DNA of 64,000 nt from Macrostomum lignano (GCA_002269645.1 NIVC01001054.1:208744-272743); one strand, 5' to 3'; numbered from the stretch's first letter, positions 1 through 51,348 are shown. Translations and numbers: made by a program. Notes: generated by a model from the sequence alone, not told the origin.

Positions 1-1744
1 GTCCTATTGTCTGTCTACATGTCTGTGTCCTATTGTCTGTCTGCATGTCTGTCTCTTATTGTCTGTCTGCATGTCTGTCTCTTATTGTCTGTCTGCATGT
101 CTGTGCCTATTGTCTGTCTACATGTCTGTGTCCTATTGTCTGTCTGCATGTCTGTCTCTTATTGTCTGTCTACATATCTGTGTCCTATTGTCTGTCTGCA
201 TGTCTGTCTCTTATTGTCTGTCTGCATGTCTGTCTCTTATTGTCTGTCTGCATGTCTGTGTCCTATTGTCTGTCTGCATGTCTGTGCCTATTGTCTGTCT
301 ACATGTCTGTGTCCTATTGTCTGTCTGCATGTCTGTCTCTTATTGTCTGTCTACATGTCTGTGTCCTATTGTCTGTCTGCATGTCTGTCTCTTATTGTCT
401 GTCTACATATCTGTGTCCTATTGTCTGTCTGCATGTCTGTCTCTTATTGTCTGTCTGCATGTCTGTCTCTTATTGTCTGTCTGCATGTCTGTGTCCTATT
501 GTCTGTCTGCATGTCTGTCTCTTATTGTCTGTCTGCATGTCTGTCTCTTATTGTCTGTCTACATGTCTGTGTCCTATTGTCTGTCTGCATGTCTGTCTCT
601 TATTGTCTGTCTACATATCTGTGTCCTATTGTCTGTCTGCATGTCTGTCTCTTATTGTCTGTCTGCATGTCTGTCTCTTATTGTCTGTCTGCATGTCTGT
701 GCCTATTGTCTGTCTACATATCTGTGTCCTATTGTCTGTCTGCATGTCTGTCTCTTATTGTCTGTCTGCATGTCTGTCTCTTATTGTCTGTCTGCATGTC
801 TGTCTCTTATTGTCTGTCTGCATGTCTGTGCCTATTGTCTGTCTACATGTCTGTGTCCTATTGTCTGTCTGCATGTCTGTCTCTTATTGTCTGTCTACAT
901 ATCTGTGTCCTATTGTCTGTCTGGGTGTTTCTGTCCTATTGTCTGTCTGGGTGTTTCTGTCCTATTGTGTGTGGGTGTTTGTGTCCTGTTGTCTGTCTGG
1001 GTGTTTGTGTCCTATTGTCTGTCTGGGTGTTTGTGTCCTATTGTCTGTCTGGGTGTTTGTGTCCTATTGTCTGTCTGGGTGTTTGTGTCCTATTGTCTGG
1101 GTGTTTGTGTCCTATTGTCTGTCTGGGTGTTTGTGTCCTATTGTCTGTCTGGGTGTTTCTGTCCTATTGTGTGTCTGGGTGTTTGTGTCCTATTGTCTGT
1201 CTGGGTGTCTGTGTCCTATTGTCTGTCTGCGTGTTTCTGTCCTATTGTGTGTCTGGGTGTTTGTGTCCTATTGTGTGTCTGGGTGTTTGTGTCCTATTGT
1301 CTGTCTGGGTGTCTGTGTCCTATTGTCTGTCTGCGTGTTTCTGTCCTATTGTGTGTCTGGGTGTTTGTGTCCTATTGTGTGTCTGGGTGTTTGTGTCCTA
1401 TTGTCTGTCTGGGTGTCTGTGTCCTATTGTCTGCCTGGGTGTTTGTGTCCTATTGTCTGTCTGGGTGTTTGTGTCCTATTGTCTGTCTGGGTGTTTGTGT
1501 CCTATTGTCTGTCTGGGTGTTTCTGTCCTATTGTGTGTCTGGGTGTTTGTCTCCTATTGTCTGTCTGGGTGTTTGTGTCCTATTGTGTGTCTGGGTGTTT
1601 GTGTCCTATTGTCTGTCTGGGTGTTTGTGTCCTATTGTCTGTCTGGGTGTCTGTGTCCTATTGTCTGTCTGCATGTCTGTGTCCTATTGTCTGTCTGGGT
1701 GTCTGTGTCCTATTGTCTGTCTGCATGTCTATGTCCTATTGTCT
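1..1744. repeat. 26-bp minisatellite array, two sub-domains
   Basis: Unit GTCCTATTGTCTGTCTGCATGTCTGT (1 to ~915) switches to GTCCTATTGTCTGTCTGGGTGTTTGT (~915-1744). It explains the three overlapping ~570-600 aa ORFs. Confidence 0.97.
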
Positions 1745-21279: not shown

Positions 21280-22948
21280 ATTTTAGCGCCGGTGGACTTG
21301 ATATTTTAGCGCCGGTGGGCTGGATATTTTAGCGCCGGTGGACTTGATATTTTAGCGCCGGTGGGCTGGATATTTTAGCGCCGGTGGACTTGATATTTTA
21401 GCGCCGGTGGGCTGGATATTTTAGCGCCGGTGGACTGGATACTTTAGCGCCGGTGGGCTGGATATTTTAGCGCCGGTGGACTTGATATTTTAGCGCCGGT
21501 AACTGGATATTTTAGCGCCGGTGGACTGGATATTTTAGCGCCGGTGGACTAGATATTTTAGCGCCGGTGGGCTGGATATTTTAGCGCCGATGGACTAGAT
21601 ATTTTAGCGCAAGTGGACTAGATATTTTAGCGCCGGTGGACTAGATATTTTAGCGCCAGTGGACTAGATATTTTGGCGCAAGTGTACTAGGTATTTTAGT
21701 CCCGATGGACTAGATATTTTAGCGCCGGTGGGATGGATATTTTAGCGCCAGTGTACTGGATATTTTAGCGCAAGTGGACTAGATATTTTAGCGCAAGTGG
21801 ACTGGATGGTTTAGCGCCGGTGGGCTGGATGGTTTAGCGCCGGTGGACTAGATATTTTAGCGCCGGTGGACTGGATGGTTTAGCGCCGGTGGGCTGGATG
21901 GTTTAGCGCCGGTGGGCTGGATGGTTTAGCGCCAGTGGACTGGATGGTTTAGCGCCGGTGGGCTGGATGGTTTAGCGCCGGTGGGCTGGATGGTTTAGCG
22001 CCGGTGGGCTGGATATTTTAGCGCCGGTGGACTAGATATTTTAGCGCCGGTGGGCTGGATATTTTAGCGCCGATGGACTAGATATTTTAGCGCAAGTGGA
22101 CTAGATATTTTAGCGCCGGTGGACTAGATATTTTAGCGCCAGTGGACTAGATATTTTGGCGCAAGTGTACTAGGTATTTTAGTCCCGATGGACTAGATAT
22201 TTTAGCGCCGGTGGGATGGATATTTTAGCGCCAGTGTACTGGATATTTTAGCGCAAGTGGACTAGATATTTTAGCGCAAGTGGACTGGATGGTTTAGCGC
22301 CGGTGGGCTGGATGGTTTAGCGCCGGTGGACTAGATATTTTAGCGCCGGTGGACTGGATGGTTTAGCGCCGGTGGGCTGGATGGTTTAGCGCCGGTGGGC
22401 TGGATGGTTTAGCGCCAGTGGACTGGATGGTTTAGCGCCGGTGGGCTGGATGGTTTAGCGCCAGTGGACTGGATGGTTTAGCGCCGGTGGGCTGGATGGT
22501 TTAGCGCCGGTGGGCTGGATGGTTTAGCGCCGGTGGGCTGGATGGTTTAGCGCCAGTGGACTGGATGGTTTAGCGCCGGTGGGCTGGATGGTTTAGCGCC
22601 GGTGGGCTGGATGGTTTAGCGCCGGTGGGCTGGATGGTTTAGCGCCGGTGGGCTGGATGGTTTAGCGCCAGTGGACTGGATGGTTTAGCGCCGGTGGACT
22701 GGATGGTTTAGCGCCGGTGGGCTGGATGGTTTAGCGCCGGTGGGCTGGATGGTTTAGCGCCGGTGGACTGGATGGTTTAGCGCCAGTGGACTGGATGGTT
22801 TAGCGCCGGTGGACTGGATGGTTTAGCGCCGGTGGGCTGGATGGTTTAGCGCCGGTGGGCTGGATGGTTTAGCGCCGGTGGGCTGGATGGTTTAGCGCCG
22901 GTGGGCTGGATGGTTTAGCGCCGGTGGACTGGATGGTTTAGCGCCAAT
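21280..22948. repeat. 23-bp minisatellite
   Basis: Unit GATATTTTAGCGCCGGTGGACTG grading into GATGGTTTAGCGCCGGTGGGCTG; contains an internal 483-bp duplication. Confidence 0.97.
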
Positions 22949-23389
22949 ATTTGGCTAAACAAAAGTGATAGCTTCGGTAGAAAGTGAGGTCCTGCATGCA
23001 CCTACCAGATTTGTGTTCATGGCCTCCTTGGATGCTCCGTTGAAGGAAGAAAACAAAGAACCCTTGACCGTCCAGTGCGATCTTATTGCTTTTTTAGATT
23101 CAGCATCCCTAGCTAGGCTACAAGGACTTCTAAAACTGGCATATTGTTGTACAACTTGCTTCCCAGTCCAGATTCCTAACGTAGTTAGGAAAAGTGGAAT
23201 CAGTGTACACCCTCTCGCACGAAGAGCGTTCGGTCAGTACCAAGGGTGGGAATAACCCGGAGGGGGGATATTTGAAGTTGAAGCCACTTGGGGAAAGCAA
23301 CTTATTCTGCTTTTTGCGTCAGAAGACTAAAAGAAGGTATAGCTTTGTGCAACAAAGTTGCAGATCGTGCTTCTTAGGGACAAATTAAA

Positions 23390-26300
23390 ATGGCGTCAGC
23401 TCAGGTAACGACTAATCTAATTGATTGATTCTAATTATTCTACGAAGAATAAATTTCGAAAGAATAACGATTTTGTCAATTCACATTTTTCAATCTAGGA
23501 TGAGGGCATGGATTTCCACAAGGCCTTCCTGTCGATCGATACGGACCAATCTGGCGAAATCACAGTTGATGAGCTGCAAAGGTGAGGCTGCATGGGTTCT
23601 TCTGGGTAGCCTTTGAACCAAGTAGCTGCAAGTTGCAGGGCGTGCCAATGTCTAACAAGTGCTATCGTGTCTAACAGGTGCTATCGTGTCTAACAGTTGC
23701 TATCGTGTCTAACAGGTGCTATCGTGTCGAACAGGTGCTATCGTGTCTAACAGGTGCTATCGTGTCTAACAGGTGCTATCGTGTCTAACAGGTGCTATCG
23801 TGTCTAACAGTTGCTATCGTGTCTAACAGGTGCTATCGTGTCTAACAGGTGCTACCGTGTCTAACAGGTGCTATCGTGTCTAACAGGTGCTATCGTGTCT
23901 AACAGGTGCTATCGTGTCTAACAGGTGCTATCGTGTCTAACAGTTGCTATCGTGTCTAACAGGTGCTATCGTGTCTAACAGGTGCTACCGTGTCTAACAG
24001 GTGCTATCGTGTCTAACAGGTGCTACCGTGTCTAACAGGTGCTATCGTGTCTAACAGGTGCTATCCTGTCTAACAGGTGCTATCGTGTCTAACAGGTGCT
24101 ATCGTGTCTAACAGGTGCTACCGTGTCTAACAGGTGCTATCGTGTCTAACAGGTGCTATCCTGTCTAACAGGTGCTATCGTGTCTAACAGGTGCTATCGT
24201 GTCTAACAAGTTCTATCAAGTCTAACGGGTGCTATCATGTCTAACAAGTGCTATCGTGTCTAACAGTTGCTATCAAGTCTAACAGATGACACCATCATGT
24301 CTAACAAGTGCTATCGTGTCTAACAGTCGCTATCAAGTCTAACAGATGACACCATCATGTCTAACAGGATAATATCATCATGTCTAATAGGATGACACCA
24401 CCATGTCTAACAGGATAATATCATCATGTCTAATAGGATGACACCATCATGTCTAACAGGATAATATCATCATGTCTAATAGGATGACACCACCATGTCT
24501 AACAGGTAACACCATCATGTCTAACAGGATAACATCATCATGTCTAACAGGTAACACCATCATGTCTAACAGGATAACATCATCATGTCTAATAGGATGA
24601 CACCACCATGTCTAACAGGTAACACCACCATGTCTAACAGGTAACACCATCATGTCTAACATCCCCCCTACCGCAGCTACTGCCGCAAGATGAACTACCA
24701 AGAGACGTTCGTGCAGAAGTGGCTGATGCTGTTCGACGCTGATCAAAACGGCCGCATCACCTACGACGAATACTGCAACGCGCTGGGCCTCCCGCCTAAG
24801 AAGGACGTCGTTGCCAAGCACAAGTCGCAGCAGAGCAAAGGCAAAAAGGTTAGGAAAAAACTTGATTTCACCTACTATGAGTAGCATTATGTAGAAATGT
24901 GTTTTTTGCATTTTGCTTCAGTCTGGCAAGACGGCACGTGCGGTGAAAGTTGCGAAGAGACGTAAGGAGCAGGAAGAGACGCGGGTCACTGTGGAGACTG
25001 TGAAGCCGCCTGTGCAAGAGGAGGTCGTGCAGGTAAAATTAACAATTTTTTTTACATAACCACTTATGAGACAATTTAGTGGTGGGTTGAGAGTTGCGAC
25101 ATGAACAGATTAGACAGGTAGGATGGGGTGAGGCATTTAGTTGAAGGGGTGAGACAGGGAGATAAAGGGATTCGACAGAGAGATGAAGGGGTGAGACATG
25201 TAGTTGAATGGGTGAGACAGGTATATGAATGGGTGAGACAGGTATATGAAGGGGTGAGACAGGTATATGAAGGGGTGAGACAGATAGATGAAGGGATGAG
25301 ACCGGTAGATGAAGGGGTGAGACAGGGAGATGAAGGGGTGAGACAGATAGATGAAGGGGTGAGACAGGTAGATGAAAGGGTGAGACAGGTAGATGAAAGG
25401 GTGAGACAGGTAGATGAAAGGGTGAGACAGGGAGATGAAGGAGTGAGACAGGTAGATGAAAGGGTGAGACAGGTAGATGAAGGGGTGAGACAGGTAGATG
25501 AAGGGGTGAGACAGGTAGATGAAGGGGTGAGACAGATAGATGAAGGGGTGAGACAGGTAGATGAAGGGGTGAGACAGGTAGATGAAAGGGTGAGACAGGT
25601 AGATGAAGGATGGGACAGGTAGATAAAGGGTGAGACAGTTAGATAAAGGGGTGATACAGGTAGATGAAGGGTGAGACAGGTAGAGAAGGGGCTGATACAC
25701 ATGACAAAGAAACACTAATTAACATTTTCCTGCAATTGAAAAGGCAGCTGCAGTTGCCCCCGTAGCCGCCTCCAAGGCTGCTGCAGCCGGTCAGGCACCT
25801 CAGCCGCCGCCGTCGCAGGCCCCCAGTCGCCGCAGCCGTATCCGCAATGAGCAGCTGAGCTACAGCGGGGTGATGCTCCACAGTCGGGCTCGGGTGTTTC
25901 AACGCAAAGCCCTGTACAGGCTGGCCAAGAAGTCGGCGGCCAACAAGCTGGCCAGGAAGCTGAAGGGAGCGGCCAGCACCGCCGCTCAGCAGCGACCGGC
26001 CGTGGTTGAGAAGCCCATCGGCGGCGATAAGAATGGAGGGATTCGGCAGGTAGGCCGGAGGCGAGAAGAAATTTTCCACCAAAGACTAATCTAGAAATTG
26101 CCCACACTCTAGACAAAGTGAGTAATTTCCCTTGCTAGAAAAAGTGAGAAATTCCCCTCTCTAGACAAAGTGAGAAATTCCCCTCTCTAGACAAAGTGAG
26201 AAATTCCCCTTGCCCCTTGCTAGACAAAGTAAGAAATTCCCCTCTCTAGACAAAGTGAGAAATTCCCCTTGTCCCTTGCTAGACAAATTGAGAAATTCCC

Positions 26301-27360
26301 CTTTTCCCTTGCTAGACAAATAGAGAAATTCCCCTTGTCCCTTGCTAGACAAAGTGAGAAATTCCCCTTGTCCCTTGCTAGACAAATTGAGAAATTCCCC
26401 TTTTCCCTTGCTAGACAAATAGAGAAATTCCCCTTGTCCCTTGCTAGACAAAGTGAGAAATTCCCCTTGTCCCTTGCTAGACAAATTGAGAAATTCCCCT
26501 TGTCCCTTGCTAGACAAATTGAGAAATTCCCCTTGCCCCTTGCTAGACAAAGTAAGAAATTCCCCTTGCCCCTTGCTAGACAAAGTGAGAAATTCCCCTC
26601 TCTAGACAAAGTTAAAAACTCCAGTCTTAAGCAAAGTGTGAAATCCCCTCCCCCCAGAAGACAAAAATCCCCTTCAATAACGGAGAGAAATCTAGGCATT
26701 CCCCAATCCCCATTCAGGTGGCCAGCCGCCGCCAGCCCCGTAGTCTGCCCACCGAGCCTACCTCGAAGCCGCGCCGTCTTCGTCCAGTCAAGACCTTCGC
26801 GCGGCAGCGACGTCGCCTCAGAGCCTCCATCCAGCCGGGCAGCGTGCTGATCCTGCTGGCCGGTCGGCACCGCGGCAAGCGGGTGGTGTTCCTGAAACAG
26901 CTGGCCAGCGGCCTGCTGCTGGTCACGGGGCCATTCAAGGTCAACGGCTGCCCGCTGAGACGCGTCTGCCAGAGCTTCGTGATCGCCACCAGGACTCGGC
27001 TGGAGCTGGGGGACCTGCGGCTGCCGGAGCGGCTCAACGATGCCTATTTTAGAAGGTTGGTTCGTGGGAGTTGTCGCCCCCTCAACTCCCATTTAAAGCT
27101 AACCCATTCTCGAACCCGCTGACAGGACCAAGAAGCAGTCCAAGCAGAAGGCTAGTTCAGCAGCCCAGGACCCGTTCACCCGCCCGGAGGCCGCCTACCA
27201 GCTCGCCCAGGAGCGTCGCGAGGACCAGAAGTCGGTCGACAGCCAGGTGATGTCGGCCTTGGTGAAGCTGGGCCGACCGGACAAGAAGCTCATGCTGGGC
27301 TACCTGAGCAGTCTGTTCTCGCTGAAGAGCGGCCAGCGGCCGCATGACATGGTGTTCTGA
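23390..27360 (+). CDS. RPL6: two-EF-hand (tegument-allergen-like N-terminus) - 60S ribosomal protein eL6 fusion, 419 aa
   Basis: Exons 23390-23404, 23499-23581, 24677-24848, 24922-25032, 25744-26049, 26718-27055, 27126-27360; all GT-AG, 1260 nt, one open frame. EF loops [12 protein letters not shown] and [12 protein letters not shown]. eL6 motifs [74 protein letters not shown]. The eL6 part is near certain; the fusion joins are inferred, and the 25744 acceptor (AAG) is the weakest. Confidence 0.8.
23648..24660. repeat. 19-bp minisatellite grading to 22-25-bp units (intron 2 of EF-hand/RPL6)
   Basis: Unit GTGCTATCGTGTCTAACAG, then GTAACACCATCATGTCTAACAG. Confidence 0.96.
25130..25690. repeat. 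21-bp minisatellite (intron 4)
   Basis: Unit GTAGATGAAGGGGTGAGACAG. Confidence 0.95.
26108..26610. repeat. 26/33-bp minisatellite (intron 5)
   Basis: Unit CTTGCTAGACAAAGTGAGAAATTCCCCTTGTCC. Confidence 0.95.
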
Positions 27361-27544
27361 GACTTATAGATTGAGAGACGATGATGGACTTACCCTGGCA
27401 GATGCCGCCCTTGTTGAGATAGTAAATTTGAAAATAGAAAGTGAAAAATTCGAACTTCATGAACTGGATTGGTTTGCTGCCGGTTGGAAATCCAACATTC
27501 GGATTTTGTTTGGAACTGATTTGAGTCACCTTAGTCTGCATTCT

Positions 27545-28370
27545 TCTCTATCCTTGTTCTCTATCCAATTCTATCTTGATTTTCTATCTATCTCTATATA
27601 TCTCTTTCTTTAGTCTCTATCCAATTCTATCTTAATTCTCTATCATATTCTATCTTGATTTTCTATCCTATTCTATCTTGATTCTCTATCCAATTCTATC
27701 AATTAATTCTCCATCAGATTCTATCTTGATTTTCTATCTATCTGTATCTCTTTCTTGATTCTCTATTCAATTCTATCTTTGTTCTCTATCCTATTCTATC
27801 TTGATTCTTTATCTATCTCTATATCTATCTCTTTCTTGAGTCTCTATCCACTTCTATCTTGATTCTCCATCATATTCTATCTTGATTTTCTATCCAATTC
27901 TATCTTGATTCTCTATCCGATTCTATCCTGATTCTCTATCCGATTCTATATTGGTTCTCTATCCAATTCTATCTTGATTCTCTATCCAATTCTATCTTGA
28001 TTCTCTATCCAATTCTATATTGATTCTCTATCCAATTCTATATTGGTTCTCTATCCAATTCTATCTTGATTCTCTATCCAATTCTATCTTGATTCTCTAT
28101 CCAATTCTATCTTGATTCTCTATCCGATTCTATATTGGTTCTCTATCCAATTCTATCTTGATTCTCTATCCAATTCTATCTTGATTCTCTATCCAATTCT
28201 ATCCTGATTCTCTATCCTATTCTATCTTGATTCTCTATCCGATTCTATCTTGATTCTCTATCCAATTCTATCTTGATCCTCTATCCAATTCTATCTTGAT
28301 CCTCTATCCAATTCTATCCTGATTCTCTATCCAATTCTATCTTGATTGTCAATGCAATTCTATCTTGGTT
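27545..28370. repeat. 23-bp minisatellite
   Basis: Unit TTCTATCTTGATTCTCTATCCAA. Confidence 0.95.
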
Positions 28371-29196
28371 CTCTTTAATTAATTTAGTTTTTCATATTGT
28401 TTGCTGTATCCATGGCAGGCCATGTTGCTAGCCAAAGTAAGCCAAAGCCCAAAGGTAATTAGAGGCGGGCTTTGAAGTGTCTTCCAGTGAAGCCACTCTT
28501 CTACTCGCATACTTTTTTTTTCCTGCCAGACTCTTCCTATAGAGCTTTTTCTCAGACTTTGCGGGGTTGCAGCACAGCCTGCAGCCGTAGACTCAACCTC
28601 ACAGCTATTTTTAGCCCAATGGTAGAGCAGCGACCTTCTGCGCTAGCGACGTCACTTACCATGGATTGCTAGAACAGAAAAATTCTGGACTGAGGAAACT
28701 GATCAATTCCTAAAATTTTAGTCTTAAAAATCTTCATTCAAAGTCTTGTAATTAGTTAGTTTTCAATAAAAAGGCTTTAAAGAGGCAGAGCGGCCCCATA
28801 GGGCTGTAATCTCGTGGCTTATTTCTCTGGGAGTTTCCTCCCCAGATGGCTGTCCCCCTCGAACTCCCTGGTCCCGCGCAGCCGCCTCTCCAATCTCATT
28901 CTCTGTCTCTCTCCCTCCCGTTCTCTGCCAGCCCGCACCCTTTTCAGTTCAACGCCCACAAAAAGAATACTCAGCTGGCATAAGCTGGGGGCGCGCGAAC
29001 GCTATTGTGTAGTTTGCTTGGTTGCTAAGCAACCGTGAGAGCGCACACATTGGCGCACAGCTATAGTTATAGAGAGAGAGAGAGAGAGACTGCTCATAAG
29101 AGCTTGCGATCCACTGCGACATCAGAGCAGAGAGCAGAGCTTACCTAGAAACAGTGCGACTTAGCGGACTCAACCTAAAAATTAAATCTTGATTAT

Positions 29197-32100
29197 ATGG
29201 CTGGCCGAGTCAACCCCGCATTCATGCAGCAGCAGCAGCAGCAGCCGGAGAACTGGATGCCGAAACCCAGCGGCGGCAGCGACTGCCCACCCGGGCTCGA
29301 GTACCTGACCCAGCTCGACCAGGTGCTGGTCAAGCAGAAGAAGGAGTTCTTTGAAAGTGAGTAGGCATTAACCTGCATTAGTCTAACGCCACCGAGCATT
29401 AATAAATCATGCAAAACGCAATACCTGTCATTCCCCTCTATTTGCAGTGGTGACTGGCTGGGAAACGAAGAACAAGTACGTAGTGAGGAACTCCATGGGC
29501 CAGCAGATCTACTATGCTAAGGAGCGTAAGTGTTCAAGCCAACCTTTTTTTGTTGTTGCCAGGGCTTTAGCTAGACCTCAGCTCTGACTCACCCGAGAAT
29601 TTGATCCAGGTTGACCCAAGCACTCGGCCCAGGTTGACCCAAGCACTCGATCCAGGTTGACCCAAGCACTCGACCCAAGTTGACCCAAGCACTCGATCCA
29701 GGTTGACCCAAGCACTCGACCCAGGTTGACCTAAGCACTCGATCCAGGTTGACCCAAGCACTAGACCCAGGTTGACCCAAGCACTCGATCCAGGTTGACC
29801 CAAGCACTCGATCCAGGTTGACCCAAGCACTCGATCCAGGTTGACCCAAGCACTCGACCCAAGTTGATCCAAGCACTCGACCCAAGTTGACCCAAGCACT
29901 CGACCCAAGTTGACCCAAGCACTCAACCCAGGTTGACCTAAGCACTCGATCCAGGTTGACCCAAGCACTCGACCCAGGTTGACCCAAGCACTCGATCCAG
30001 GTTGACCCAAGCACTCGATCCAGGTTGACCCAAGCACTCGATCCAGGTTGACCTAAGCACTCGATCCAGGTTGACCCAAGCACTCGACCCAAGTTGACCC
30101 AAGCACTCGATCCAGGTTGACCCAAGCACTCGACCCCAAGCACTCGATCCAGGTTGAGCCAAGCACTCGACCCAGGTTGACCCAAGCACTCGACCCAGGT
30201 TGACCCAAGCACTCGACCCAGGTTGACCCAAGCACTCGATCCAGGTTGACCCAAGCACTCGACCCAGGTTGACCCAAGCACTCGACACAAGTTGACCCAA
30301 GCACTCGACCCAGGTTGACCCAAGCACTCGACTCAGGTTGACCCAAGCACTCGACACAAGTTGACCCAAGCACTCGACCCCAGGTTGACCTAAGCACTCG
30401 ATCCAGGTTGACCCAAGCACTCGATCCAGGTTGACCCAAGCACTCGATCCAGGTTGACCCAAGCACTCGACCCAAGTTGACCCAAGCACTCGACCCAAGT
30501 TGACCCAAGCACTCGACCCAAGTTGACCCAAGCACTTAACCCAGGTTGACCTAAGCACTCGATCCAGGTTGACCCAAGCACTCGACCCAGGTTGACCCAA
30601 GCACTCGATCCAGGTTGACCCAAGCACTCGATCCAGGTTGACCCAAGCACTCGATCCAGGTTGACCTAAGCACTCGATCCAGGTTGACCCAAGCACTCGA
30701 CCCAAGTTGACCCAAGCACTCGATCCAGGTTGACCCAAGCACTCGACCCCAAGCACTCGATCCAGGTTGAGCCAAGCACTCGACCCAGGTTGACCCAAGC
30801 ACTCGACCCAGGTTGACCCAAGCACTCGATCCAGGTTGACCCAAGCACTCGATCCAGGTTGACCCAAGCACTCGACCCAGGTTGACCCAAGCACTCGACA
30901 CAAGTTGACCCAAGCACTCGACCCAGGTTGACCCAAGCACTCGACCCAGGTTGACCCAAGCACTCGACACAAGTTGACCCAAGCACTCGACCCCAGGTTG
31001 ACCTAAGCACTCGATCCAGGTTGACCCAAGCACTCGATCCAGGTTGACCCAAGCACTCGATCCAGGTTGACCCAAGCACTCGATCCAGGTTGACCTAAGC
31101 ACTCGATCCAGGTTGACCCAAGCACTCGACCCAAGTTGACCCAAGCACTCGATCCAGGTTGACCCAAGCACTCGACCCCAAGCACTCGATCCAGGTTGAG
31201 CCAAGCACTCGACCCAGGTTGACCCAAGCACTCGACCCAAGTTGACCCAAGCACTCGATCCAGGTTGACCCAAGCACTCGATCCAGGTTGACCCAAGCAC
31301 TCGACACAAGTTGACCCAAGCGCTCCACCAAAGTTAACTAAGCGTGGCTCCCCACCGCGCCGCAGACTCTGACAATTGCCAGCGCCAGTGCTGCGGCAAC
31401 CAGCGCGCATTCGAGATGACGGTGGAGGACAACACGGGCCAGGAGGTGATCCACATCAGCCGGCCCTACAAGTGCATGTGCTACGGCCAGTGCTTCTCCT
31501 GCTCGAAGTGTTGTTTCGACACGGTCACCGTGGAGGCCCCGCCCGGCCGCGTGGCCGGCAAGGTGAAGCAGATCTACGGCTGCTGCGAGGCCAAGTACAA
31601 AATCGAAGACAAGGATGGCGACACCGTGCTGTACATTGACGGACCGAGCTACTGCAAGTGCTACTGCCCCGGGGATGACATCCCGTTCAAGGTGAGTCAG
31701 GGTGATTCGTTCGGGCTCATAGGTCAGGATTCTAATTGGTGGGTCAGGATTCTAATCGGTGGGTCAGGATTCAAGTTGGTGGGTCAGGATTCTAATTGGT
31801 GGGTCAGGATTCTAATAGGTGGCTCAGGAGTCTAATCGGTGAGGCAGGAGTCTAATTGGTGTGTCAGGAGTCTAATTGGTGTGTCAGGAGTCTAATTGGT
31901 GTGTCAGGAGTCTAATCGGTGGGTCATCAGGATTCAAATTGGTGGGTCAGGATTCTAATCGGTGGGTCATCAGGGTTCAAATTGGTGGGTCAGGAGTCTA
32001 ATTTGTGGGTCAGGAGTCTAATTGGTGGGTCAGGAGTCTAACTGGTGGGTCAGGATTCTGGTTTGTGGGTCAGGATTATAGCTCGTGTGCCGGTGCATGG

Positions 32101-48597: not shown

Positions 48598-51348
<2,751 letters not shown>

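Follow-up and report, generated by a model that had tools for sequence, protein, structure and literature searches.

A small folded domain is encoded in frame with, and N-terminal to, a ribosomal protein in the ubiquitin-eL40, ubiquitin-eS31 and FUBI-eS30 fusions, in which this domain is cleaved off after a Gly-Gly motif. To our knowledge, ribosomal proteins almost never gain folded signalling domains. Canonical eL6 (RPL6; Pfam families Ribosomal_L6e and Ribosomal_L6e_N) has its own Met start and contains no folded N-terminal domain. The protein occupies the back of the large subunit, where its N terminus is positioned at ES7L, and its N-terminal helix threads the ES7L junction in animals and plants (PMC10281867).

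In flatworms, EF-hand pairs of about 80 aa form the N-terminal module in tegument-allergen-like (TAL) and CaBP proteins, such as CsTAL3 of Clonorchis (PDB entry 5x2e), SmTAL of Schistosoma and FhCaBP of Fasciola, and the TALs have in addition a C-terminal dynein-light-chain-like dimerisation domain. Flatworm genes can also be arranged in operon pairs that are resolved by spliced leader (SL) trans-splicing. Flatworm SLs all end in an AUG that is able to initiate translation (Cheng 2006, as cited in PMC12582326). The SL of Macrostomum lignano is CGGTCTCTTACTGCGAAGACTCAATTTATTGCATG, with a terminal ATG. For the annotation of this species, RNA-seq transcripts were divided wherever SL and poly(A) sites had been measured (PMC5730564), and the GenBank models were presumably derived from that pipeline. 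Here we describe an M. lignano locus in which an EF-hand pair and eL6 are encoded in one reading frame.

Results

The locus was analysed within a 64,000-nt stretch of M. lignano DNA, referred to as the window, to which all positions refer. Rebuilding the exon model of positions 23390-27360 (+) gave seven GT-AG exons that form a single 419-aa frame, with a CDS of 1260 nt and a TGA stop at 27358-60 (Table 1); every intron of the gene starts with GT and ends with AG. The translation matches the M. lignano protein PAA72884.1 (BOX15_Mlig004334g1) with 100% identity over 100% of the length, and the CDS of this protein, NIVC01001054.1:232133-236103, equals the 3971-nt feature in the window. The original prediction for this locus had proposed seven exons with one EF-hand-eL6 frame, and its junctions 24848/24922, 25032/25744 and 26049/26718 are correct, all being in phase 0 in the rebuilt model. 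Both genomic copies of the gene in M. lignano have kept 12 of the 12 splice sites and an intact frame (pN/pS 0.22), and intron 3 is identical at 71 of its 73 nt in the second copy. A candidate poly(A) signal, AGTAAA, follows exon 7 at 27421. No Rfam family, intronic snoRNAs included, and no SL RNA gene was found across the whole window, and inspection by eye of the region 5' of the EF-hand exon for TOP-like promoter motifs gave nothing convincing.

Table 1. Features of the fused gene, in coordinates of the 64,000-nt window.
Feature	Position	Strand	Remarks
Exon 1, start codon and MASAQ	23390..23404	+	matches PAA72884.1 CDS start; in-frame TAG upstream at 23375
Exon 2, first EF-hand	23499..23581	+	loop 1 at 23538-23573
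Intron 2, 1095 nt	23582..24676	+	packed with 19-bp and 23-bp minisatellites
Exon 3, second EF-hand, TAL-like C..LGL.P motif and Lys-rich tail	24677..24848	+	loop 2 at 24735-24770
Intron 3, 73 nt, fusion joint	24849..24921	+	donor GTTAGG, acceptor CTTCAG
Exon 4, Lys/Glu-rich tether	24922..25032	+	counterpart of the variable N-terminal extension in animal eL6; phase 0
Exon 5, Ala/Pro-rich tether, then eL6 N-terminal helix motif and GGDKNGG segment	25744..26049	+	
Exon 6, eL6 globular core	26718..27055	+	contains invariant alignment columns
Exon 7, eL6 C-terminal helices and stop TGA	27126..27360	+	

In-frame ATG codons are present at 23390, 23508, 24690 and 24726, all of them in the EF part, and the next one is found at 25873 (M171), inside the eL6 N-terminal helix motif of exon 5 (about 25840-25932). 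The ATG at 23508 in exon 2 (M9) is the counterpart of the MDFHKAF start of the orthologues. In-frame stops are located closely 5' of exon 4 (TAG 24892) and exon 5 (TAA 25720), with no ATG between these stops and the exons. Upstream of the conserved N-terminal motif, the eL6 exons thus lack an own start codon, just as the listing of start codons in the original prediction had it; an out-of-frame ATG at 25847 was missing from that listing. Exon 3 terminates on a codon boundary, and reading through the donor of intron 3 (24849) leads to a TAG at 24882-84, where the prediction had also placed the end of an unspliced EF-hand frame (TAG 24884). This stop of the upstream ORF is present only when intron 3 is retained.

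The EF-hand-to-eL6 frame was recovered in at least 12 independent samples, on contigs that are mRNA-like and lack introns, representing about eight divergent lineages whose fused proteins are 41-55% identical to that of M. lignano. Continuous ORFs spanning both parts, with their own 5' and 3' UTRs, are carried by contigs L001-L007, L011 and L015-L017; contig L008 carries the same fused ORF with one frameshift in an A10 run, and the unrelated genomic contig L009 has a two-exon version, in which the EF exon is joined in frame to the eL6 exon across a GT..AG intron. An exhaustive profile search found both domains solely in this small group (442-608 bits), the next matches being plain eL6 proteins with at most 301 bits. 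Two proteins that looked like EF-less relatives, P0272 and P0146, are really fused genes split by the homopolymer frameshift (L008) or by the intron (L009). When a flatworm-like eL6 core was used as query in a homology search, Paragonimus was the sole named flatworm among the matches listed.

A pure annotation or assembly chimera is ruled out, because the fused frame recurs in assemblies made independently from divergent species and is present in each of the two M. lignano copies. Many species have conserved the joined frame in mRNAs that look mature, and the fusion is therefore a real product and not merely a chimeric annotation. These data confirm that it is a real, conserved variant of a ribosomal protein in Macrostomum lignano and several relatives. 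The fusion is already deposited in public databases and is apparently undescribed in the literature searched, in which we found no match for an EF-hand/eL6 fusion, for RPL6 in Macrostomum or for the gene identifier, nor anything in the searched supplements of M. lignano papers.

With the eL6 part (265 aa) as query, phmmer aligned residues 13-265, up to the last one, to animal eL6 chains of solved structure (E = 1.8e-63 to about 1e-57), which agrees with the proposal that a complete eL6 follows the linker. The alignment with human eL6 opens at query residue 13 and runs from human residue 53 onward, the N-terminal motif being included, and 49 invariant columns are common to the fused eL6 part and canonical eL6. 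Pfam family PF01159 is listed for P0001, and PF03868 (Ribosomal_L6e_N) is listed for P0004, P0006, P0007 and P0009 but not for P0001; the N-terminal helix motif is missing from the P0011/L008/L009 lineage. The top Foldseek matches are all eL6 chains, even though the AF2 model has low confidence over this part. The eL6 part, which is complete, has the look of the ordinary eL6 of the lineage, and not of a side paralogue.

The original prediction interpreted the protein as a lineage-specific, divergent eL6 paralogue. In the corresponding alternative considered here, a canonical eL6 is encoded elsewhere, and the fused copy is a divergent duplicate that serves a subset of ribosomes, a single tissue or a function outside the ribosome. 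The M. lignano protein does have LPTEP in place of YPTED, many genes of this species are duplicated, and a second eL6 may fall beyond the matches listed (the best 120 per homology search) on which the comparison is based. However, all of the flatworm-like eL6 sequences examined, the unfused one of Paragonimus among them, diverge in the YPTED region, and the fused cores cluster with trematode eL6: in an NJ distance tree the fused P0010 and P0011 groups join Paragonimus eL6 with 100% bootstrap, the value for the M. lignano group being below 50%. Moreover, the six M. lignano eL6 entries among the matches listed (clusters P0001, P0002, P0003 and P0005) are all of the fused type, and a search among the same matches for a separate canonical RPL6, or any other eL6 of M. 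lignano, returned none. The fused form is also abundant enough to be assembled from environmental metatranscriptomes, as ribosomal-protein mRNAs are. The paralogue interpretation is not supported by the matches listed, and we regard it as the least probable of the alternatives discussed here.

In the trematode Paragonimus, eL6 is plain and starts at an ATG of its own, which implies that the EF-hand is dispensable for eL6 function in some flatworms. There is no EF-hand coding sequence within 10 kb upstream of this gene, and an ancestral neighbourhood of EF-hand and eL6 genes in the trematode was rejected on this ground.

Both EF loops of the M. lignano protein are canonical 12-residue loops, as had been anticipated, with D1, D3, S/N5, G6, I8 and E12, and both have Glu at -Z. 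Residues D, D, G, E and I of loop 1 are invariant in nine fused sequences, and this loop is canonical in 9/9 family members (in P0273, positions 5 and 12 are Cys and Asp); for loop 2 this holds in 7/9, and in the P0011/L008/L009 lineage it is degenerate, with His at -Z. In an AF2 model built from a seven-sequence alignment, which outside the EF domain is too poor for domain contacts to be read from it, the EF domain has a pLDDT of 73-84 over residues 10-80 and consists of four helices and two short strands.

The EF domain of CsTAL3 (5x2e) is the best single-domain PDB match, with 48.8 bits for the sequence and 63.1 bits for the family profile, the per-domain scores listed for other proteins, among them a calmodulin/calcineurin-B fusion (4il1) and a plant CDPK (2aao), being 8-36 bits. 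The alignment to 5x2e extends through the C..LGL.P motif, and the same entry is the first non-eL6 match in Foldseek (TMt 0.72). These matches bear out the assignment of the EF module to the flatworm TAL type. Everything past the tether is eL6, and a dynein-light-chain family is not among the Pfam families listed for any fused protein; as this domain is absent, the fused protein is not a TAL by architecture.

The mean pairwise identity of the fused proteins is 67.5% in the EF module, 52.8% in the eL6 core and 21% in the linker, showing that, at the level of the aligned sequences, constraint is tighter on the EF module than on the ribosomal core. The tether is unconserved, varies in length and has an AF2 pLDDT below 45, and is predicted to be disordered; in P0265, an expansion of a 48-aa repeat in the linker is tolerated.

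Such a linker would be open to proteases, which raises the possibility that the EF-hand module is cut off after translation, so that a TAL-like calcium-binding protein is released in amounts that follow ribosome production, while the ribosomes carry plain eL6. N-terminal fusions of small domains to ribosomal proteins have precedents, and full-length CsTAL3 was cleaved between its two domains during crystallisation (PMC5431922). In the alignment, however, no conserved cleavage motif, GG or other, is present at or after the boundary of the EF module, and this module is not ubiquitin-like. Moreover, we know of no dedicated protease, and we consider this explanation highly improbable.

The alternative that deserves most attention concerns the acceptor of intron 3. 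Among the acceptors of the gene, CTTCAG at 24922 alone agrees with [T/C]TNCAG, the trans-splice motif of M. lignano, and it is followed by TCT in phase 0, with the result that an SL-donated ATG would be in frame and the product would read MSGKTARAV... An EF-less eL6 isoform may therefore coexist with the fusion. A contig from a relative of a fused lineage (L010/P0124) hints at such an isoform: it encodes an EF-less eL6, opens with cATG exactly at the fusion boundary and contains in its 3' end TTATTGCATG, the same 10 nt with which the M. lignano SL ends. As this contig begins 1 nt before the ATG, it represents either an SL-type mRNA or a truncation, and it was not accepted as proof of an unfused paralogue.

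Taken further, the locus could be an operon-like one with two outputs, in which 24922 is mainly trans-spliced to give an EF-less eL6 of 330 aa, the upstream exons encode a separate 101-aa EF-hand protein ending at TAG 24882, and cis-splicing, in competition with trans-splicing, produces the fused mRNA only as a minor by-product. Besides the in-frame acceptor and the contig just mentioned, this explanation can draw on the facts that flatworm annotations often mis-fuse operon genes, and that acceptors are widely common to cis- and trans-splicing. Several observations argue against it. The transcript-derived M. lignano annotation retains the 419-aa fusion, unsplit at 24922. From the at least 12 samples of about eight lineages, the fused form alone was assembled, and neither the matches listed nor their 90% clusters include an EF-less variant of these sequences. 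In L009, an ATG donated by the SL would not be in frame, so the gene on this contig can make eL6 only as a fusion. The 73-nt interval 24849-24921 contains no AATAAA-like or other poly(A) hexamer, and the very strong conservation of the EF module along with eL6 would be unexpected in a by-product. We therefore think that this two-output scheme is unlikely, although SL addition at 24922 is mechanistically possible as the source of a coexisting isoform; it cannot be the whole story.

Discussion

Based on these results, the locus is probably the M. lignano eL6 (RPL6) gene, which in this flatworm lineage has 5' exons for a TAL-type EF-hand pair. Cis-splicing from the donor at 24849 to the acceptor at 24922 yields one mRNA with one 419-aa frame, and the fused protein would assemble into the 60S subunit like any eL6. 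On the back of the subunit, its solvent side, the N-terminal helix of the protein would pass through the ES7L junction, and the EF-hand pair would consequently hang beside this expansion segment on a flexible tether of 70-150 residues. There, the pair would bind Ca2+ and, depending on Ca2+, would also contact either the surface of the ribosome or some partner. The EF module has been kept on eL6 across deeply diverged lineages and is more conserved than the core, which argues for a selected function on or alongside the ribosome.

As to its origin, a TAL-like EF-hand gene may have been located upstream of eL6, a donor in this gene having captured the acceptor at the start of eL6. The captured acceptor may once have received the spliced leader, the terminal AUG of which was the eL6 start codon. 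It is because the spliced leader would formerly have supplied the start codon that such a conversion of an operon into a fusion is conceivable. We tentatively extend this view, with rather more reserve than for the locus itself, to a clade of free-living flatworms comprising Macrostomum and other lineages: essentially every cytosolic ribosome of these animals might possess a built-in Ca2+-sensing EF-hand pair, tethered to eL6 near ES7L, conserved for a very long time and derived from a TAL-type gene that captured the trans-splice acceptor of eL6.

If true, no ribosomal protein with a calcium sensor as an integral part would have been described before, as far as the literature searched shows. 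Both transgenesis and RNAi are available in M. lignano, and a ribosome-resident fusion would offer a natural, genetically tractable system for the study of a direct action of Ca2+ on the ribosome surface near ES7L. The locus is also relevant to the function of the TAL/CaBP family of EF-hand proteins, and to how AUG-donating SL trans-splicing can turn neighbouring genes into fusions. For annotation it holds a warning in both directions: fused gene models of flatworms can be chimeras, but the EF-hand-eL6 model is not one.

Compared with canonical eL6, the C-terminal 260 residues of the fused protein align end to end, with the N-terminal helix and the invariant core, and they are preceded, as in other animals, by a poorly conserved extension rich in Lys, Ala and Pro; in contrast to canonical eL6, the start codon is situated in the added EF-hand exons. 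The EF-hand pair is of the same subtype as that of the TAL and CaBP proteins (KW..LFD, C..LGL.P), and in both families it is the N-terminal half of a two-part protein, but eL6 occupies the position that the dimerisation domain has in the TALs. In addition, only the first loop of CsTAL3 binds Ca2+, the second one not doing so because its -Z position is Thr, unlike the two Glu residues of M. lignano. The SL-resolved operon pairs of flatworms, and the chimeric models made from them, resemble the locus in that a strong acceptor, where an SL with a terminal ATG would be in frame, comes within 73 nt of an upstream ORF; here, however, an upstream donor permits the use of the same acceptor in cis, and the joined frame is conserved in many species. 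Finally, the ubiquitin-type fusions have in common with the EF-hand-eL6 protein that a small, folded and conserved domain is encoded in frame and N-terminal to a ribosomal protein, so that the two are made in a 1:1 ratio, but their domain has the ubiquitin fold with a terminal Gly-Gly, whereas that of the M. lignano protein is an EF-hand pair without such a motif.

Structure of the fused gene and its surroundings

The coding sequence rebuilt from the window comprises 1260 nt and specifies a protein of 419 aa (see table) that is identical over its full length (100%) to PAA72884.1, 'hypothetical protein BOX15_Mlig004334g1', whose CDS (NIVC01001054.1:232133-236103, assembly GCA_002269645.1) coincides with the 3971 nt of the window feature. 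The rebuilt model and this identity reproduce the seven GT-AG exons and the single 419-aa frame of the original prediction. Its layout of two canonical EF loops, a Lys-rich and then Ala/Pro-rich linker and a complete eL6 is likewise borne out by the model and by phmmer, in which the eL6 part matches animal eL6 chains from the N-terminal helix motif through the last residue (E = 1e-57 to 1e-63). In-frame ATGs are present in the EF part (23390, 23508, 24690 and 24726), and then only at 25873 (M171, within the eL6 N motif). Exons 4 and 5 are each preceded by an in-frame stop (TAG 24892 and TAA 25720, respectively) with no ATG between stop and exon, and hence the eL6 exons are unable to initiate translation alone. 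The claim that no eL6-side ATG precedes 25873 thus holds in frame, the sole correction being an out-of-frame ATG at 25847 that had not been mentioned.

Coordinates of the fused gene, its product, the adjoining minisatellites and the related locus L009
Feature	Position	Strand	Remarks
EF-eL6 gene, exons 1-4	window 23390-23404, 23499-23581, 24677-24848, 24922-25032	+	rebuilt model, GT..AG introns
EF-eL6 gene, exons 5-7	window 25744-26049, 26718-27055, 27126-27360	+	rebuilt model, GT..AG introns
EF-hand pair	residues 9-74		two canonical loops
Linker	residues 75 to ~156		Lys-rich, then Ala/Pro-rich
eL6, complete	residues ~157-419		phmmer match to animal eL6 chains
Minisatellites	window 22000-22945, 23649-24661, 25112-25699, 26093-26599, 27591-28374		introns 2, 4, 5 and both flanks
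L009 (genomic-looking)	EF-hand exon 395-681; intron 682-877; eL6 exon 878-1535		GT..AG intron

Minisatellites with units of 19, 21, 23, 26/33 and 23/46 bp (6 to 41 copies, 80-92% identity) fill introns 2, 4 and 5, three of the gene's four longest, as well as both flanks; none is found in the 94-nt intron 1 or the 70-73-nt introns 3 and 6. Intron 6 measures 70 nt in the window, whereas its counterpart in the second M. lignano copy extends over ~900 nt. Three older M. lignano models (ML2 / WormBase ParaSite), P0002, P0003 and P0005 (A0A1I8JNJ5, A0A1I8FHH7 and A0A1I8FP09), render the fusion with frameshifts or faulty splicing, one of them being named 'SANT domain-containing protein'.

Elsewhere in the window, an ORF segment at 49871-50330 (+), probably one exon of a peptidase gene of the ClpP/S49 type, matches signal-peptide peptidase SppA / protease IV (3rst, E = 5e-7) and continues into a long microsatellite of the (CTGT/CTGTCTGT)n type. 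A Cys-rich ORF segment at 31344-31700 (+) (…RPYKCMCYGQCFSCSKCCFDTVTVEAPPG…KYKIEDKDGDTV…), adjoining a minisatellite at 29.5-31.4 kb, has no sequence match in the PDB and is, we assume, reminiscent of phospholipid scramblases.

Fusion or chimeric gene model

About 30% of M. lignano genes are trans-spliced and operons are present (PMC8629364), and chimeras that merge operon genes are known from flatworm annotations (PMC12582326). RNA-seq transcripts split at experimentally mapped spliced-leader (SL) and poly(A) sites formed the basis of the Mlig_3_7 gene set (PMC5730564), which retains the 419-aa fused ORF despite this splitting; the GenBank gene models appear to derive from the same pipeline.

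Protein searches recovered the fused relatives P0004, P0006, P0007/P0008, P0009, P0010, P0011 and, later, P0273, which carry both the EF-hand and the Ribosomal_L6e Pfam families and show 41-55% identity to the window protein at 98% coverage, except P0011, whose coverage is only 43% because its eL6 N-terminal region is missing. Their contigs are mRNA-like (1.1-1.6 kb, without introns, one continuous ORF), with individually different 5' UTRs of 17-158 nt and often an AATAAA in the 3' UTR. The original prediction had proposed searching related flatworm transcriptomes for EF-hand+L6e proteins, and such proteins were found in at least 12 independent samples (SRR28338163-6, SRR30276804/12, SRR14039982, ERR1719229, JGI 3300019149, 3300073438/58 and 3300030569). 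In an exhaustive profile search covering 1.84 billion representatives, EF-hand and eL6 occur together only in this small fused group (442-608 bits), the next score being a plain eL6 at 301 bits.

Two loci considered as EF-less relatives were rejected: L008 contains the entire fused frame, interrupted by one frameshift within an A10 run, and in L009 the EF-hand and eL6 exons join in frame (318 aa). The L009 acceptor is in phase 2, which would put an ATG donated by the SL out of frame, so that the gene can make eL6 solely as a fusion. The transcript-based annotation, the fused relatives with their mRNA-like contigs, and L008 and L009 confirm that the EF-eL6 fusion is real and not a chimeric gene model.

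Trans-splicing at the fusion joint

It should be considered whether a trans-spliced, EF-less eL6 isoform is also present at a meaningful level, which would be compatible with a fused principal product. The M. lignano SL is CGGTCTCTTACTGCGAAGACTCAATTTATTGCATG (PMC8629364) and, according to Cheng et al. 2006 as cited in PMC12582326, flatworm leaders all end in an AUG usable as initiator. Exon 4 begins at a codon boundary, and therefore SL plus exon 4 would encode a 330-aa eL6. The gene has six acceptors, of which a single one, CTTCAG at the fusion joint (window 24916-24921), fits the reported M. lignano trans-splice motif [T/C]TNCAG. P0124, encoded by contig L010 (JGI 3300030938), is an EF-less eL6 and the 100%-bootstrap sister of fused P0010; its first residue maps directly after the EF module of P0010, that is, at the fusion joint. 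L010 opens (1-12) with 'cATGGAAGCG', placing the ATG at nucleotide 2, and at its 3' end (927-936) reads TTATTGCATG, the same 10 nt with which the M. lignano SL ends, followed by TGATTGTGATTT. This decamer was found in none of the 16 other loci and nowhere in the window. L010 may represent an eL6 mRNA with SL initiation that the assembler linked to a second SL-capped transcript, and its sequence suggests that at least one relative has EF-less, SL-initiated eL6 mRNAs.

As the leading explanation in M. lignano, however, such an isoform is opposed by an annotation that is unsplit at the 24922 acceptor, by the lack of an EF-less version of the fused lineages among the matches listed, by the acceptor phase of L009, which does not suit an SL-donated ATG, and by the absence of a poly(A) hexamer within the 73-nt intron 3. 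We consider the fused protein to be probably the principal product, and a meaningful level of the EF-less isoform beside it to be rather unlikely.

In the second M. lignano copy (L013:2612-2690, NIVC01000227.1; site equivalent to window 24889-24894), the intron-3 TAG (window 24892-94) reads CAG. The frame ATG(24889)-CAG-AAA... is consequently open into exon 4 there, which is not so in the window copy, and an intron-retaining transcript could start eL6 4 nt past the EF-hand stop.

Kinship of the eL6 half

A simple NJ distance tree was computed from 178 columns of the eL6 core with 200 bootstraps. At 100% bootstrap it unites the eL6 of the trematode Paragonimus kellicotti (P0442, 247 aa, without EF-hand) with the fused P0010 and P0011/L008/L009 groups. 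The P0007/P0009 group and the M. lignano group, to which P0004 and P0006 also belong, adjoin this cluster without support, and P0273 (Tara Oceans) is an outlying long branch. The P. kellicotti gene (L014, LOND01000823.1) consists of two coding exons and starts at an ATG of its own, and the 10 kb to each side of it show no potential to code for an EF-hand; the fusion is absent from at least one trematode.

The original prediction had regarded the gene as a divergent eL6 paralogue marked by LPTEP in place of YPTED, which would imply a separate canonical eL6 elsewhere in M. lignano. This was not supported: the 'YPTED' region is divergent in all of these eL6 sequences, unfused Paragonimus included, and all six M. 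lignano eL6 entries among the matches listed are of the fused type. A specialised paralogue is thus weakly disfavoured. We read the fused gene, from these sequences, as the ordinary eL6 of its lineage, the fusion having been lost or never present in trematodes. The fused taxa beyond M. lignano are environmental or SRA assemblies, and the fusion may span both sides of the macrostomorph/other-rhabditophoran split.

Conservation and signs of selection along the fusion

Over nine fused sequences, the EF module has a mean pairwise identity of 67.5%, followed by the eL6 core (52.8%), the eL6 N motif (33%) and the linker (21%). In the alignment, 27 EF-module columns are invariant, most loop ligands among them; the second loop is degenerate in the P0011/L008/L009 lineage (His at position 12). 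Linker length ranges from ~20 to ~90 residues. P0265 (JGI, 408 aa, in the 90% cluster of P0008) has a 48-aa expansion of the tether between the EF-hands and eL6, in which a ~16-aa unit, KPVDQKPKDxTSAAPV, stands three times in tandem; judged from this insert, changes in length are tolerated in the tether. In the second M. lignano copy (PAA87491.1, L013), 12/12 splice sites are kept and the frame is intact; it differs from the window copy at 7 amino acids, with a pN/pS of 0.22. An AF2 model, built on a 7-sequence alignment and weak outside the EF domain, has pLDDT values of 73-84 in the EF domain, <45 at residues ~110-170 and poor values in eL6; ribosomal proteins fold on rRNA.

By analogy with ubiquitin-ribosomal-protein fusions, the EF module might possibly be removed post-translationally, but the fused-sequence alignment contains no conserved cleavage motif.

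Proposed mechanism and comparison with known systems

The fusion is made from one mRNA in one frame, without a separate eL6 start, and combines a conserved EF module with a floppy tether; its calcium and ribosome roles we infer. On the large subunit, eL6 occupies the back (solvent) side, with its N terminus at ES7L, and the region preceding its N helix is the least conserved stretch of the protein (PMC10281867). The fusion would assemble into the 60S subunit as other eL6 do, with the EF-hand pair hanging on a ~80-residue tether next to ES7L as a putative Ca2+-dependent docking or regulatory appendage. The tether (exon 4 and the first half of exon 5) resembles the Lys/Ala/Pro-rich N-terminal extension of animal eL6, which fits joining exactly at the old start of eL6. 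The L010 contig suggests an origin in which a trans-splice acceptor, at which the SL had formerly provided the eL6 start codon, was captured by a donor site of an EF-hand gene lying upstream.

The fused protein is already in GenBank and UniProt, auto-named eL6; literature searches on the EF-hand/eL6 architecture, RPL6 in Macrostomum and the gene id found no paper. To our knowledge, no ribosomal protein has been described with an integral EF-hand sensor.

The best single-domain PDB match of the EF module is 5x2e, the calmodulin-like domain of the Clonorchis tegument-allergen-like (TAL) protein CsTAL3 (48.8 bits by sequence, 63.1 by family profile), in an alignment spanning the unusual KW..LFD and C..LGL.P motifs; the per-domain scores listed for other proteins (calmodulin/calcineurin-B fusion, plant CDPK) are 8-36 bits. 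The same entry is the first non-eL6 Foldseek match (TMt 0.72). TALs are defined by a calmodulin-like EF domain and a C-terminal dynein-light-chain-like domain, and CsTAL3 shifts its conformation on Ca2+ binding (PMC5431922). The M. lignano fusion shares the EF-domain type of the TALs, many of which have a second loop degenerate in much the way of that in the P0011/L008/L009 lineage. The proposal of a TAL in which this C-terminal domain was replaced by eL6 therefore stands as regards the TAL-type EF module; since no dynein-light-chain-like domain is present, however, the fusion is not a TAL, and we class it as an eL6 with an accessory TAL-type EF-hand domain.
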